DNA from: Dimorphilus gyrociliatus
Taxonomy: Eukaryota > Animalia > Annelida
Assembly (NCBI GenBank): GCA_904063045.1
Contig: CAJFCJ010000008.1
Location: 434,001-498,000, forward strand
DNA length: 64,000 nt
Direction: 5' to 3'
The position numbers were made by a program, and so were the translations under genes. The notes under the pieces are model-generated. The model did not search any database and had not been told where the DNA came from. It saw nothing but the letters and a program-made list of their open reading frames with translations. The first letter of the stretch is position 1, and each line of letters starts with the position of its first letter. Positions 818-9,014 of the stretch are shown here, piece after piece.

Positions 818-3800
818 ATGAATTTTAACGTAAATGCAACCCAAGAAGATTTAACGTTATTACAAACATTAGATGAGAAAACCTTATTAGAGGAGATTCA
901 AATGCGTTATAAAGGAAATAGAATTTACGTAAGTAATATCTTAGATTTTAATTAATATAAATATAGTCGTGAAAAATATTTCAACATTCTTTTTCGTGAC
1001 TCATTCGTATTGTAATAAACTTTTTGTTCTACTTGCTTATTTTGTCATATATATAGTGAACAATGAAAATTCAACTCTTAACCACCGATATCTAAACTTT
1101 AAATGAAAATATAGTAAATAATCTAGACTATTATACACTATTTAATTTACTTACTCTTCTTTTATTAATAATATCATAATATAATTGAAAATATACAACA
1201 ATAGGGAAAGTATAAAAAGTCTACTCTTGTTTTGTATTTGAAAAGAAACGAGGGTAATGTGAAAAGATATGAGCTTGTAATCATAATACAAATATTATTA
1301 AAAATCTTAAAAGGAAGTAGACTACACTCAAAAATGATATTTCTAACATTGATTTCTTTTAAACTATGCTTTTTCTTGATAAATTTATCTTTTCTTTTAC
1401 TTTTTTATAGACTTATATAGGTGATGTTCTCCTATCTATTAATCCCTATAAGGATATATCAATATATTCTATAAGACATCAAAGAGAATATACCGATATT
1501 AAAATACGCCAAGCTCTTCCTGCTCATGTATATGCTATTGCTGACAACGCCTATCAGACTTTACGTCGAACCAGACAAAGTCAAACTATAGTGATTAATG
1601 GTGAATCGGGCTCCGGTAAGACACAAAATGCTAAATTTCTTACACAGCATATTGCATTTGTTAGTGGAGGTCATCTGGATATTGATGAACTTGAGACAAG
1701 GATTATTAAAGCTAATCCTTTATTGGAAGCGTTTGGTAACGCAAAAACGATAGCCAACGATAATTCATCGAGGTTCGGTAAATATTTAGAGATAAAATTC
1801 GATAACGACGGAGAAATGATCGGTGCTCTCATAAATGAATACATGCTGGAAAAGTCAAGAATAATTCGATGCTCACCGGGTGAAAGAAACTTTCATATCT
1901 TTTATCATATGTTTGCTGGTTTATACGACGAACAATTAAAAAATAATCTACTCGACCAGCCCGATGATCACAGAATCTTGCATACATTCGACGGTTCTCG
2001 AGTATTCGCCGATCGACAATCTTATATTTATCATCAAAGCGCCTGGGATGAACTGATGAGAATTATGACTACTGTTGGATTCAACGAAGAGCAAATAGAG
2101 ACGTTAATTGCCCTACTAGCTGCTATATTACACATAGCTGATATAGAATTCGCGCACGATGTCGAAACAGATGGTGCCTACATTTTAAATGAAAATTGTC
2201 TTGAAGTATCCGCAGAATTTCTAGGTGTCGATGCCGGTGATCTTGCAAGATGTTTTATATCAAGTAGTCAAATTGTTAGAGGGGAGGAAATTGTCATGCT
2301 TAAAACTGTACCACAGGCAGAAGACACTAGAGATGCATTGGCCGTCTCTCTATACTCAAGAGTATTTGCATGGATAGTAAGGCGAATAAATCTAATGCTA
2401 ATGCCTGAAAGGCGATACGCTACAGGACAGACAATTGGTATATTGGATATGGCTGGATTCGAAGATTTTAACGAAAACAGGTTAGAGTTTTTACCTTATA
2501 GCTATTTATATAAATACATTTACAGACAGTAGATGGCTCCACATCATAGCATATGCACTGAAGTTAAACTTTTCTCTTTTTTCCCTACTCTTTCTCTTTT
2601 TAGCTTTGAACAATTATGCATAAATACGGCGAACGAAGAGCTTCAATTCTTCTTTAATTTTTACGTTTTCCGCCAAGAATTAGACGAATATAGTCAAGAA
2701 GGAGTAAAAGGAAAAACAATTAAATACACGGATAATGGTGCAATTTTAGAGATGCTCTTACAAAAACCACTTGGTTTATTTGATATCATTAACGAGGAGA
2801 GTAAAATTCGTACCGCAACCGACCTCACTTTAGCAGAAAAGTTTAATAAATACTTTTCCGCTAAAAAGAATATTTATATTAAAATTAAAAGTAAACCTTT
2901 ATGCTTTACTATAAACCATTACGCTGGACCAGTTACTTACGGGTGTGGTGGTTTCTTAGAAAAGAACCGACATACTCTTAGCCATAATTTACTCGATTGT
3001 CTTAAAATGTCCCAAAGTCAAATCGTTTCGGATTTATATGCTGCGAAATTATCGTCAACCGGATCTCTTCAAATGAAGTAAATTGATTCTAATTAGTATA
3101 GTAAATTAACAAAATAAATTGCTTTTCTTCCTTCCCTTCTATTTTTAGCCCTGATGCTCCTATGAGGAATAGACAATCAGTTCTTTATAAAAAACCTCCA
3201 TCGTTAAATCTGAAAAATAATCAGAGTATTTCAAAGAAAGCTGGTAAACAAGTAAAGAGTAAAATGTCTAAGGGAATTGTTCAAACTTTGGATAGAACTA
3301 CAAATTCAAAGACTTTATCTTCGCAATTTACGAATTCTCTAGTTGAATTAGCTTCTAAATTGCACGATTCTCAACCAACATTTATTAGATGCATTAAACC
3401 GAATTCAATGAAACAATCGAATAAATTTGATATAGAATTGGTAAGAAAACAATTGAAATATACAGGAGTAATGGAAGTAATTCGAATTAGAAAATCTGGT
3501 TATCCTACTCGTATTTCTCATAGGCAATTTATTGATTTGTAAGTAATTTTCTACCTATTTTATATATAATCTATTAATAATTACATATTATACTTAATTT
3601 ATATTTTCATATGCTTCCCTTCTATCTTCTCTCTATGAACGATAATATCAACAATTGCAAATAATAATAATAATAATAATAAAAACAGGTATAAAATAAT
3701 AGCATTCAATTTAACGAGTAAGGTTGAACCAACAGGTTCAAATTGTTTGAAAATACTTAAAGCTACAAATCTTCATCAATTCGAGATTGGTAAGACTAAA

Positions 3801-6413
3801 GTGTTTCTTAAGCATTATCATACGGAATTATTAGTAAGAAAACTGGATGATATTGGATGGAAAATCGTTCGTGTTCAAAAACAAGCTAGAAGTTATTTGG
3901 CGAAAAAACGATTTAAATGGTTGGTCGTTAAGGCAAAAGCTGAACAAGTTGAATTAAAGGCATTCTGTAAATCGGTTGCCAATATATCGAATGCTAAATA
4001 CGATATTATTAATGCGCACCAACATCACGACTCTTTAAGATTTCATAAAAAGGTAGATGGCGCTCTTGTCATATCATAATTTCGTTTTAATGTTTTTATT
4101 CTTCTTTATCACTAAATGAAATTTATATCTTGATAAACACAAAGGCTAAGGAACTAGAACAGCAAAGAAAGGCTCAACAGGCCCAAACTGCTCAGGAAAA
4201 TATCTATCAAGCAACACCAATTTCGTTCGCTCTCAAAAAGGAAAAACCTAAACCTAGACCAAGACAAATTACGACTTCTAAGAAGAATCAACAGCCAAGA
4301 TCATTGTCCAAAATGAAAATGCCACCTCAAGAAACAAACAAACTACTCGATACAATTCTTGATGAAACTCTCGGTCGTTATACTGATATTGATATTGGCA
4401 TATGGGCGAAGGTGTATTATTTTGAAAGAAATGAGGTTTGGCCCTTACACTATTTATCTTCCTATTTGATAAAGCTAAAGCCAATATTTGTTATCGGTCG
4501 TGCTTAATTTTATCTATTTTTATTCTCCGTTAGGTTGTTGCGAAATTTTATGTTAGGAATCGTGAATTCGTCATAAACGATAGCGATGACGAATATCAGG
4601 GTCGAATTATTGGTATTGGATGCTTGGAAAATGATATTAGGGACGAAAGAGTAAGGAGAGTTCGACGATTGTTTGGCGACGGTATAACGTTATCTCGCGA
4701 ATCCGATGGTTCAATTTCAATTGTTAGAGAGACGACATGTCCAATTATCGTTAGAGGTTATGAATATCCTGAATTTTTCTGTCTATCTCGCGATGTAATA
4801 GAGAATGGCGGAGAGCTTGAGAAAAATAAGAAGACAACATTATTCGATATGGACGAATTCAAAAAGAGGATAGCTTCGGAACTCGAAGATGAAGACAAAG
4901 CGGGGAATATGGAGAAGAATCTACAAAGAATGACCATAACCCGAATAGCTATTAATGAAGATACCGAATCCGACCTACAGACTCCCTGCTGGCTAGCTAT
5001 AATTAACTTTTGCGCATTGGACGCTCTAGGAAGCGATAGAGGTAAGAAAAAACAACTTTATTCCTATAAGAAACGATTATTTAAATAAATTTGAAACACT
5101 CGGAGAGGAGCTTTCTCTTCAACGGGATACCTGTTTATCTACCGCACGCATTTTTCCAACAAGATCAACATAACATCGCACGTGTTACTGTGCTAAACAC
5201 ACAAAAACCTTTTCCTTCTATATTCTGTTATAAAAGAAGTACCGCACGCGTGTTTCGAAACATCCATCTATTGTAATAGAGCAAAAAAAATATTGAACCT
5301 TAATCTTTCCATCTTTCCCTACTTTTCAGTCTTGAAAGAAATTCGAATGCTCATCAAACAACCCCATCACAAAGACGACGCCATCATGAAGGTATGTAAT
5401 ATACACACACATACAGTATAAGTAGATAAGTAGGTGTCTCTCTTTAAATCATACAATAATATATTGATATTATTAGATCAATTTAAATTAGTATTCATCA
5501 AAACTATTACATTATGTATTCAATAATTATATGTATACAAGTTTAATTACCTATCTATTTAGTTGAGAAACGGTCGAATGCCGCCTGCTCTAAGCTATTT
5601 TCCGCCCGATAAACTGACTAAAATGCGTAGAAAACGTGCAGAAAACGAACGTTACGCCGTTGAAATCGGCGATCAATTAAGCGAGAAAAATAGATTTCTT
5701 TTTAAGGTTTTCTTTTAAATATCCCATAACCTTTGAGGTTTCTTTTTTTAATATATTCTAAATATATTATAATAATACGTTCCCCTTTTTACCCTTTAAC
5801 TCACCTTATATTCCTTTTATTGTACTAGTCTCCAAACAACATCCCTACAAAAAGCTGCACACCTTTTATCTGAAGCCTTATAACACTACCGCTAGGAATT
5901 CATTTATTAATTATTATAATTAAAAAAATTGCTATGATAACTATTCCCAAGGTGAAAGAGTTGAAAAATTAACGGTTATCCACTTTACCTAGTTTTATGT
6001 TACTCGTTCAAGGAGGAAAGGCAACTCTTTCTTGTGTCTAATAACACTAATTATATTAGTCGTCACCGTTTCCGATTTTTACACGTTCTTTTCATATTTT
6101 TTCAAATCTCTTCATTCACTCTAATTATATACCTGAGGGAATGGAAAGAAGGAATAAAGTCGGATACGGTGTTAAACAATTAGGATAATAATTAATCAAT
6201 AAACAAAATATATGCTAATTACTTTTTCTCTCTTTTTTATAGAGAAATTGGGCTAAAGTAAATTTAAGACCCAAAGAACAAAGACAACTAGGATTAGGTC
6301 AAGATTACAGAGAATTGGAAAGAGAAGAGGAACACGTGCAAGTGCTGCCCCCTCATGAGCATGTAACTAAGAAAAAAGAATGGGCAAAGCAAAAAGGAGG
6401 GTTCAACTATTGA
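818..6413 (+). CDS. Unconventional myosin (class III/XVI/XXVIII-like motor, no N-terminal kinase), one IQ motif, C-terminal Smad MH2-like domain; multi-exon
   Basis: Exon 818-928 (MNFNVNATQEDLTLL...RIY) splices to 1411 (TYIGDVLLSINP). Motor motifs: P-loop GESGSGKT, switch I NDNSSRFGK, switch II DMAGFE, FEQLCIN, FIRCIKPN, GKTKVFLK. IQ motif VQKQARSYLAKK. The tail has WAKVYYFERN...TPCWLAII (MH2-like), then three small GT-AG exons ending KGGFNY* at 6411-6413. Confidence 0.9.
4403..5028 (+). other. Smad MH2-like domain in the myosin tail (split by intron about 4436-4532)
   Basis: WAKVYYFERNE|VVAKFYV...IIGIGCLENDIRDERVRRVRRLFGDGITL...LFDMDEF...LQRMTITRIAI...TPCWLAII aligns by eye with the Smad MH2 pattern WCSISYYELNQRVGE...FCLGLLSNVNR...TRRHIGRGVRL...IFNNQEF...LTRMCTIRMSF...TPCWIEL. 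Confidence 0.8.

Positions 6414-6471: not shown

Positions 6472-6511
<40 letters not shown>
6472..6511. repeat. (AAT)n microsatellite in the myosin 3' flank
   Basis: Direct reading. Confidence 0.85.
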
Positions 6512-6512
<1 letters not shown>

Positions 6513-7129
6513 GAAAACACATGGAAAGGAAGAATGAAGAAAATTTTAAGACAAACTATATTTTATATTCAGTCTAAATTGTTTATTTTATCATCTTTAT
6601 TAATCTTGATTTCCAATGGAAGATAAATAACTTTTTTTCTTCTATTGCATTAATAAAGTTGAATCATTAATAAATCTCGCAATTCTCACGAAGATCTACA
6701 TAATCGCTAATCTCCAGGAATACTTAATTATATCGAATTTTCTCTAAAACACTTTTCTTTCCTTTCAAACGAGGTGAGCAGGTGTAGTTCCCTCCCACTG
6801 GCACTTCAGTAAGGTCCCTTCTTCCTTTTACCGATGCGTGCGCGAATTTCTATAACCGGAACTAGACGCCTTACCGTAAAATGAGAGTTTGTAAGGGTGA
6901 AGGTCATTTTGTTGAATGCTGCCAACGCTCTGACACACGTCACGTGACATGCCAATCAGAAGAGATTATGTTTGCAGCTACGGTACGCTCGAAAGCGTTT
7001 GAAAAGGTGCCTCAGTATGTACAGTTATTACTATAATTTTGGGATTGTAGTTTTTATAATAGGAAAAGTTTGTCAAGTTTAATAAAGAGTTTCGTAGTCG
7101 TTTCGTACAAACTTCTAAACCCATGTCTA

Positions 7130-7163
<34 letters not shown>

Positions 7164-7224
7164 CTTGCACTGGCATTGCAAGGGCTCGGCTGCTTTTTAC
7201 GTTTCTCAATAAAAACAAGCGGAA

Positions 7225-7345
7225 AGTGGGAACGTTCGTGCTACGTTAAATAAACATCCTCTAACCTTATCCAAACCGATAGCCAACAACTTTGATTGAC
7301 AAGTAGCACGTGCTGAACTATCCAATAGGAAATACAAGGAGGCGG
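7225..7345 (+). promoter_or_regulatory. Hey-A proximal promoter elements
   Basis: Imperfect CSL site AGTGGGAA at 7225-7232, palindromic AGCACGTGCT at 7305-7314, CCAAT at about 7322 and a GGAGGCGGAG GC-box at about 7338, upstream of ATG 7470. Confidence 0.4.
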
Positions 7346-7469
7346 AGTCTTCTTTAACGAGCTTCTTCGCGGAAACGCCACACGCATTCATTTACAACTT
7401 GAGCGCTTGTAGCGTTCGGATATATGGTTCATATTTTATATTAAACGATAATTACCACACGAGAAAAAA

Positions 7470-9014
7470 ATGAAACGAGCTTACAGCGACGACGGTTCGG
7501 ATTTCGGCGATGACGATCCATACAAAGACGGGTAAGATATTCCATATTAAAATATTAACGCATATGTAAATATACGTTCTTTAAAGGCTATAAATAATTT
7601 TTTTCATTAATAATTAAATAAATAAAAAAAATAACAATGCCTTTAAAAATACTGGTATTTAATTGGTGCATTTTTATGTAATGGAATACGGTTGAATGCT
7701 TTATTATTTCCAATAAAGTAGAGAGAAAAAACAATATCCCTGTTCGTTCCCCCCCTCTCTCTCTCTCTCTCTCTCTCATTCCGTATTACCAGCCTCTTTG
7801 TTCCCTCTCTTGAACGCTTCTAATAAATATATATTTGGAAAATATTATGTTTAACTTTCTTCTTTTAATCTGACAGCTCACCGGATCAAAGCTGTGATGG
7901 GTCGGCGAGGAAGAAACGACGAGGGGTAAGATATTTTATTTGTCTATTGCGCAATGTTAATTAATTTAGGATTGAACAAAGGCTATAAAAGAATTTTTAT
8001 TAGAAGTTTTATTAGATAAAAAAAAGTTAGAACAAAAGAATAGGAAAGAAGAATAATGAAAAATTTACAATCGGATTAGCAAACGACAAAAAAAACCCTT
8101 GAATATGTTCATTCATACGAATAATGATCGCGTAAAGTATCTTCACACCTTTTTAGACAGTCGCAATAGGGAAACGTATAGAAACGTAATCTGTATGAGG
8201 ACGCCCGCGGACTTCGGGTGGTCGATAGCGTTTAGAAAACACTTAATGTCACGTGATCATCTCCACAGATTGTCGAAAAACGTCGTCGAGATCGTATCAA
8301 TCAGAGCCTAATAGAGCTGAAGCGTCTTGTGCCTGCCGCCTATGAGAAACAAGGATCTGCTAAGCTGGAGAAGGCAGAAATACTGCAAATGACCGTTGAC
8401 CACCTGAAGATACTAAATCAAAAAGGTAACGCTCTTTTAGCCCTTTTGCTCTCGTCCGTGTAGCTCGCGTTTCGCACGACCCAAATGACCCCTAGCATTT
8501 AAATAGTTGTCTGAAGAGTTTGTTTTCATTTTCTACGGATTACATAGCAAAACTCTCGTGGGAAACAGGTATGAACGGTTACAATGTGGATCAAGCGTCT
8601 ATGGCAGTCGATTACAGAACAATAGGATTTCGGGAATGCGCATCGGAAACTGCTCGTTACCTCGTGGCCGTCGAAGGAATGGACATCCAGAACCCGTTGA
8701 GAATTCGCCTTTTGTCTCATTTGGAATCTTTTTGCGCTCAACGAGAAGCGGCCGCCAGAGCCAGTTTGCAGCAGAATCAGTGGGCGGCACCTATAGCCTA
8801 CGCCCAACCTACCTGCCAATACACGCCGCCTCTTTCTAGTCAAGTTACTATCGATAATTGCCTACCAGCTCATTGTGCCCCGCCTACTTTAATCTCTCAG
8901 ACTAATTTGCAAAATAGCAGTAGTCAACCATCTCTGCATACCTCATCTACCGCCTCTCTTACTATGATCTCCTCGAAACCTTATCGACCTTGGGGAGCGG
9001 AGTTGGCCTATTAA
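7470..9014 (+). CDS. HEY: Hey (hairy/E(spl)-related with YRPW) bHLH-Orange repressor, copy A
   Basis: Exons 7470-7531, 7877-7925, 8269-8425 and about 8548 or 8569 to 9014 (two in-phase acceptors are possible), all GT-AG. Encodes ARKKRRG|[47 protein letters not shown], Orange domain [13 protein letters not shown]...[10 protein letters not shown], and ends [10 protein letters not shown]. Confidence 0.95.

Follow-up and report, generated by a model that had tools for sequence, protein, structure and literature searches.

An MH2-tailed, probably myosin III-like gene of the annelid Dimorphilus gyrociliatus, with a tail domain of the Expansion type

Does a single gene of the annelid Dimorphilus gyrociliatus join an actin motor to an MH2 domain, and if it does, what kind of myosin and what kind of MH2 domain have come together? 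The question was raised by positions 818-6413 of the window, a 64,000-nucleotide stretch of AT-rich animal DNA (28-40% G+C) from a 78-Mb assembly (contig C8:434001-498000), for which a first-pass annotation made from the letters alone had proposed a kinase-less unconventional myosin fused to a Smad-like MH2 tail. We read the gene, with a probability of roughly 0.8, as an unconventional monomer-type myosin of the MH2-tailed 'myosin III-like' group, made up of class 80 and the lophotrochozoan orphans; its identity as an MH2-tailed myosin is very probable. The MH2 domain belongs to the Expansion/Rebuf N-alpha-MH2 subfamily and is not of the Smad type.

The fusion was traced through relatives of the tail. 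A profile search with exon 7 alone, which encodes the core of the MH2 domain, was carried out against 1.84 billion representatives and gave 174 matches, and the best long matches were all proteins with a Myosin_head domain and a C-terminal MH2. These MH2-myosins came from bivalves (Sinanodonta, Potamilus, Mactra, Dreissena and Solemya), gastropods (Patella, Haliotis, Littorina and Batillaria), the starfish Acanthaster and the jellyfish Rhopilema; annelid relatives appeared as tail fragments only, from Ridgeia and in a motor-less Helobdella model. In RefSeq such proteins carry the misnomers myosin-IIIb-like, IXAa, Ia-like and X-like. The exons of the window gene were collinear, junction to junction, with the Myosin_head+MH2 proteins P0018 (Acanthaster), P0001 (Sinanodonta), P0143 and P0135; in P0018, exons 1 to 5 align in turn to residues 7-34, 35-391, 393-543, 557-684 and 687-807, and exon 7 to residues 907-1063. 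Because the exons follow full-length mollusc, starfish and jellyfish proteins in this way, motor and MH2 most probably lie in one gene. Some orthologues were found on contigs that barely exceed their coding sequence (P0008, 1,139 residues on 3,802 nucleotides; P0100, 1,702 on 5,972; P0178, 1,200 on 4,705), which suggests that these contigs are mRNA-derived and that the fused mRNA exists in those species. Myosin_head+MH2 architectures were recovered from many invertebrate proteomes, as the first-pass annotation had guessed. When the Sinanodonta tail region was used in a word-index search of proteins, only five came back, all from bivalves; such a search is too insensitive to give the range of the family. 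One Logan contig protein, P0079 (1,473 residues), showed seven weak stretches together with Gly_rich_2, DUF5793 and Fic_N; with such bacterial-type domains and no MH2 it was rejected as a member of the family, being most likely a chance or low-complexity match.

In our model the gene has 10 exons on the + strand, whose summed length of 3,585 nucleotides corresponds to 1,194 codons and a stop. All nine introns are GT-AG and AT-rich (19-34% G+C), every phase is compatible and most acceptors are pyrimidine-rich, and the proposed in-phase splicing of motor to tail accords with phases and orthologue collinearity alike. The intron coordinates first given were at most one base off: intron 5 runs from 4053 to 4144, not from 4052 to 4143, and intron 6 from 4436 to 4533. 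Exon 1 (818-928; Pfam Myosin_head positions 2-29) contains the start codon and the N-terminus of the motor, and aligns to the extreme N-terminus of orthologues, including residues 4-36 of P0143. The motor core is encoded by exon 2 (1411-2480; Myosin_head 30-380, 359 bits), with the P-loop at 1600-1623, switch I at 1756-1782 and switch II at 2446-2463. Exon 3 (2604-3077; Myosin_head 382-530, 133 bits) holds the lower 50K region and aligns to P0001 377-531, immediately following the match of exon 2, and exon 4 (3149-3538; Myosin_head 535-630, 88 bits) holds the loop 2 region and the SH helices and aligns to P0001 545-661. Exon 5 (3689-4052; P0001 663-783) takes in the end of the converter, an IQ-like motif at 3861-3917 and the first part of the tail. 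Exon 6 (4145-4435) encodes a basic linker and then, at 4337-4432, the N-alpha helix and the first MH2 strand, and exon 7 (4534-5041) the MH2 core with a short L3 loop, NEDTESDLQ, at 4954-4980. A helix continuing from the MH2 is encoded by exon 8 (5330-5391), which has a strong acceptor and restores the reading phase, its change from phase 1 to 0 fitting the model. Exon 9 (5563-5706; 144 nucleotides, skippable in frame) is a putative basic tail exon recognised by its open frame and good splice sites only, and exon 10 (6243-6413) carries the end of the C-terminal tail, which is basic, with RNWAK at 6243-6257, KEWAK at 6375-6389, and the stop codon.

The joins draw on different kinds of evidence. 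Those from exon 1 to exon 5, as well as the place of exon 7, are backed by the collinear orthologue alignment, and the join of exons 6 and 7 by matches that run in order along 4r9p, the PDB chain of the Drosophila Expansion N-alpha-MH2. For exons 5 and 6 the basis is the splice sites, the phase and a length-matched gap in the orthologues: the exon 6 linker has 97 residues and the unaligned gap 87-99, and no significant alignment was obtained between the linker and any orthologue sequence. Exon 8 is tied in by a VLKE(I/V) match across the join of exons 7 and 8 (GSDR-V-LKEIRMLIKQ, compared with ESPG-V-LKEVQNHLTQ in Patella, other orthologues being similar), and exon 10, which starts with RNWAK, by a conserved C-terminal motif. 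When exons 8-10 were compared with the tails of orthologues by BLAST, nothing significant emerged, and only such short motifs were informative. The C-terminal motif, [RK]xW[AS]K, was present near the C-terminus of 18 of 99 tails and in 0.45% of shuffled tails. Homology in the motor or neck, or an origin in annelids or molluscs, marks 16 of the 18 as MH2-myosins or fragments of them; for the remaining two, P0028 and P0128, the assignment comes only from the motif and their place in the MH2 tree. None of the named ecdysozoan Expansion-type tails examined had the motif, and the region between exon 7 and exon 10 of the window gene contains no other WAK-like motif. We know of no description of this motif. 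In MH2-myosin tails from starfish to molluscs (P0001, P0004, P0018 and P0161 among others) it is often doubled, and the Rhopilema tail has the degenerate form MKWISK.

The motor was found to be complete, as had been claimed: exons 1-4 cover Myosin_head profile positions 2-630 collinearly. Its catalytic motifs are all canonical, with GESGSGKT in the P-loop, NDNSSRFGK in switch I and DMAGFE in switch II, and Glu occupies the TEDS position, so the motor appears competent for catalysis. Identity in exon 2 amounts to 49% (364 bits) with the Acanthaster MH2-myosin and 42% with that of Sinanodonta, against 37-38% (253 and 241 bits) for the best paralogues among the approximately 15 myosin genes of its own genome. 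With its 49% identity to the starfish motor, this slowly evolving copy may help to join the lophotrochozoan orphans to class 80. The nearest motor paralogue, locus L007, is the true class III myosin of the genome (Pkinase+Myosin_head+IQ; contig C9 near 32 kb). At L007:1024-4062 (+) a single open frame of 1,013 residues comprises the C-terminal half of the kinase, a full canonical motor and an IQ; the missing part of the kinase has to be encoded by an exon further upstream. A careful tree of the exon 2 block united the MH2-myosins and this class III paralogue with support 97/99, and monophyly of the MH2-myosins alone was neither recovered nor rejected (approximately unbiased test, p-AU 0.13) in that tree, which was made without Kollmar's full data set. 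Upstream of the ATG at 818 no kinase domain was found and no + strand open reading frame of more than 45 residues ends there; an 80-residue open reading frame at 713-955 passes through this ATG into exon 1. The epithet 'kinase-less' was thus apt, the gene being a kinase-less relative of class III with a kinase-bearing class III gene as its nearest paralogue.

The fusion of Myosin_head and MH2 is not new, having been described in 2014 and again in 2017. 'Myosin III-like' myosins with an MH2 tail were reported from Salpingoeca rosetta and Oscarella carmela (Sebe-Pedros et al., 2014; PMC3942036), and class 80 myosins, with a C-terminal MH2, from Ambulacraria, with lophotrochozoan orphan myosins sharing the same architecture (Kollmar and Muhlhausen, 2017; PMC5583752). 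The first-pass annotation, which treated such a fusion as unknown among well-studied myosins, had been anticipated by both papers, and the fusion would be no surprise to myosin specialists; the group was catalogued twice and never studied functionally. Like these MH2-myosins, the window gene combines a kinase-less motor nearest to class III with a short neck and a C-terminal MH2, and shares with them a total length of about 1,130-1,250 residues and the C-terminal [RK]xW[AS]K. Class 80 as defined covers Ambulacraria only, whereas the window gene is spiralian and its MH2 clusters with those of annelids. Class III myosins (NinaC/MYO3) are related through the motor, and RefSeq calls the orthologues 'myosin-IIIb-like'; they differ in having an N-terminal kinase and another tail. 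In Kollmar's trees the lophotrochozoan MH2 orphans lie near class 36 (PMC5583752), whose chitin-synthase myosins are likewise spiralian and have a possible chitin link in common with the window gene. The chitin-synthase-linked head of the present genome, on contig C14, is only 23% identical to the window gene in the exon 3 block. A special kinship with class 36 was rejected: the C14 head was the most distant paralogue and joined only fast gastropod sequences, with long-branch warnings.

The tail does contain the recognisable MH2 that had been announced, since exon 7 matches the Pfam MH2 profile at 57 bits (cut-off 25; E 3.9e-15) and was modelled by AlphaFold with a predicted local distance difference test score (pLDDT) of 93.1. 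A six-frame family search of the whole genome recovered the same exon 7 domain and four Smad-type MH2 loci, the MH2 of the myosin being the only non-Smad one. When exon 7 was compared by phmmer with all PDB sequences, a single chain was matched, 4r9p (residues 71-236; E 7.1e-15), and no Smad chain was found at E <= 0.01. In Foldseek the exon 7 model again had 4r9p as its best match (template modelling score, TM, 0.89; root-mean-square deviation 2.2; 27% identity), with Smad MH2 domains second (TM 0.71-0.78; 17-20% identity). Residues 65-96 of exon 6 align to 4r9p 37-68, which is the extra N-terminal helix with the first strand, and the two matches are collinear across intron 6; the same residues are 45-50% identical to ecdysozoan Expansion-type proteins. 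The N-terminal helix was modelled on a mollusc orthologue fragment, P0002, standing in for the complete domain of exons 6 and 7. This model aligned to 4r9p with Z 29.6 over 205 of 210 residues, starting from chain residue 27, and to Smads only from the canonical start, with Z of about 20-21. The nearest ESM Atlas clusters were MH2-only proteins of nematodes.

The first-pass annotation was also right that the L3 loop is not that of a Smad and that the SSXS motif is missing. The stretch RIAINEDTESDLQTPCW, which it cited as the L3 position, is present, and the loop has 9 residues between strands, compared with 15 in the three Smads of this genome that were used. The 9-residue length was shared by 17 of 18 myosin-linked and 57 of 77 Expansion-type domains; the loop of Expansion was reported as shortened, 11 residues versus 17 by its authors' count (PMC4388265). 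The protein ends in ...KGGFNY without SSXS, and Pfam gave no MH1 match in any exon. With the Smad L3 loop and SSXS absent, the protein is therefore not a TGF-beta signal transducer. Smads share with the window domain the MH2 fold, the conserved TPCW strand and core residues, but differ in possessing MH1, an L3 loop 6 residues longer and SSXS, and in lacking the extra N-terminal helix. Expansion and Rebuf agree with it in subtype, in the extra helix, in the equally short loop and in the absence of both SSXS and MH1; in these motor-less nematode and arthropod proteins, however, the domain is N-terminal, whereas in the window gene it is C-terminal, after a full motor and neck.

In the MH2 trees, a single clade (97/89) unites the ecdysozoan proteins whose MH2 is N-terminal; those with names come from nematodes, C. 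elegans among them, and arthropods, Drosophila among them, and Expansion orthologues have been reported from these two groups only. The window MH2 falls in a cluster of seven (96/93) to which the annelid sequences of Ridgeia and Helobdella also belong, and the myosin-linked domains are placed between the Expansion clade and Smads. Two quick trees rooted on the genome's own Smads mirror the species tree, with cnidarian, echinoderm and then spiralian myosins beside ecdysozoan Expansion, which thereby falls within a grade of myosin-linked domains, and the pre-bilaterian and deuterostome members are all myosin-linked. A tentative scenario, to which we give distinctly less than even odds, is that the N-alpha-MH2 of Expansion/Rebuf and the tail of the MH2-myosins form one lineage that was ancestrally myosin-linked and lost its motor in Ecdysozoa, the window myosin being the spiralian counterpart of Expansion/Rebuf and, as such, the missing cofactor of chitin translocation. 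If so, the ancestral state would be the one kept in cnidarians, echinoderms and spiralians here, and in the choanoflagellate and the sponge of the literature. The Expansion/Rebuf-type tail connects an orphan class of myosins with the one set of N-alpha-MH2 proteins whose cell-biological role is known, and the link offers a testable idea both on how spiralians manage without Expansion and on where Expansion came from. No open paper uniting the words rebuf, myosin and MH2 was found, which is no proof that the link is new.

That known role is apical chitin translocation and tube morphogenesis in Drosophila, where the synthase Kkv requires the Expansion/Rebuf N-alpha-MH2 in order to translocate chitin, and where this domain is effective only if other regions of the protein bring it to the apical side (PMC9894549). 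By analogy, the N-alpha-MH2 module of the window myosin may be a phosphorylation-independent protein-binding adaptor, as in Expansion/Rebuf, which the motor would anchor or move along actin at the cell cortex, thereby supplying the localisation that Expansion/Rebuf get from their own non-MH2 regions. The product would be an Expansion-like adaptor that is anchored to actin in the apical cortex and might serve chitin synthase; the most specific guess, a role in chitin or apical matrix beside the synthase at the apical membrane, is possible, but we hold it to be rather doubtful. If the single-lineage scenario above were true, the myosin would enable chitin synthases to translocate chitin where apical membranes are rich in actin, for instance at microvilli shaping chaetae, jaws or cuticle. 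The genome has 4-5 chitin synthase loci, and one of them adjoins the myosin head on contig C14. At this site (C14: 697628-699772 (-) and 694350-694979 (-); loci L022, L025 and L038) the head immediately precedes the chitin synthase domain and shares its strand, as in class 36. It has a degenerate P-loop, GESGSGKG, and an equally degenerate switch I, NKNSTRFTK, and judging from these motifs may be catalytically impaired; if the single-lineage scenario holds, the window myosin could provide the active motor where the chitin-synthase-fused head looks degenerate.

Several points weigh against our reading of this gene as an MH2-tailed, myosin III-like motor with an Expansion-type tail. All searches and scans of the gene were made exon by exon, and the joins were drawn from homology and splice signals. 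The acceptor of intron 5 (ACACAAAG) is weak, and no homology was found for exon 9 by BLAST against orthologue tails. Of the 'one IQ' originally announced, an IQ-like motif is indeed present in exon 5, but its score of 16.1 bits (E 0.0095) is below the Pfam cut-off of 20.3. The root of the MH2 tree is unstable, the careful tree attaching Smads to a long branch within the spiralian group with poor support, and the direction of evolution therefore rests on parsimony and distribution rather than on the root. The chitin role was drawn by analogy, and echinoderms, a group that the chitin synthase survey consulted does not mention, are classically said to lack chitin; starfish nevertheless keep an MH2-myosin, and the ancestral role was therefore probably broader than chitin.

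The alternative that survives best is that the locus holds two genes, or two promoters, producing a motor-IQ protein that ends at a stop at 4077-4079 with intron 5 unspliced, and a motor-less Expansion-like protein that begins at an ATG of exon 6 (approximately 4312), a short way before the N-alpha helix. If the exon 5 donor is read through, a stop does follow after 9 codons, there are in-frame ATGs in exon 6 ahead of the helix, and the weak acceptor of intron 5 would fit; the ecdysozoan relatives, moreover, are motor-less proteins with an N-terminal N-alpha-MH2. On the other hand, exons 5 and 6 are only 92 nucleotides apart, the phase is preserved at every join, and more than 10 orthologues hold both domains in one protein with a linker of equal length, some of them on mRNA-sized contigs. 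We therefore consider two genes very improbable and retain the single fused gene.

The first-pass annotation had further suggested that the MH2 tail binds Smads or SARA-like adaptors and that the motor transports TGF-beta components. The domain has the MH2 fold, Smad MH2 chains are clear structural matches (TM 0.71-0.78), and four Smad-type MH2 loci are available in the genome. In spite of this, no Smad chain reached E <= 0.01 in phmmer, the L3 loop, the part that contacts phospho-serine and receptor, has 6 residues fewer and an unrelated sequence, and the Expansion-specific N-terminal helix covers the concave face. Expansion itself does not transduce TGF-beta signals, and the N-alpha-MH2 subfamily takes no part in this signalling (PMC4388265). 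Nothing was found in favour of the cargo idea, and the carrying of Smads or SARA is very unlikely. That the gene is decaying or without function, its frame having stayed open by chance, is barely credible: no other MH2 of its cluster has diverged as far (end branch 0.9-1.2 changes per column; 57 bits against Pfam MH2 versus 80-105 bits in orthologues), but the ten open exons have intact splice sites, the catalytic motifs are canonical, the MH2 model is very confident (pLDDT 93), the short C-terminal motif is conserved, and this is the sole copy in the genome.

Around the fused gene, a few further features were recorded. A (GA)n microsatellite lies at 756-810, immediately 5' of the start codon, and an (AAT)n run at 6478-6500, shortly after the stop codon; CT/GA-rich runs appear again in open reading frames at 7000-7700. 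The downstream neighbour, at window positions 8329-9014, is a gene of the Hairy/Hey-type basic helix-loop-helix (bHLH)-Orange family.

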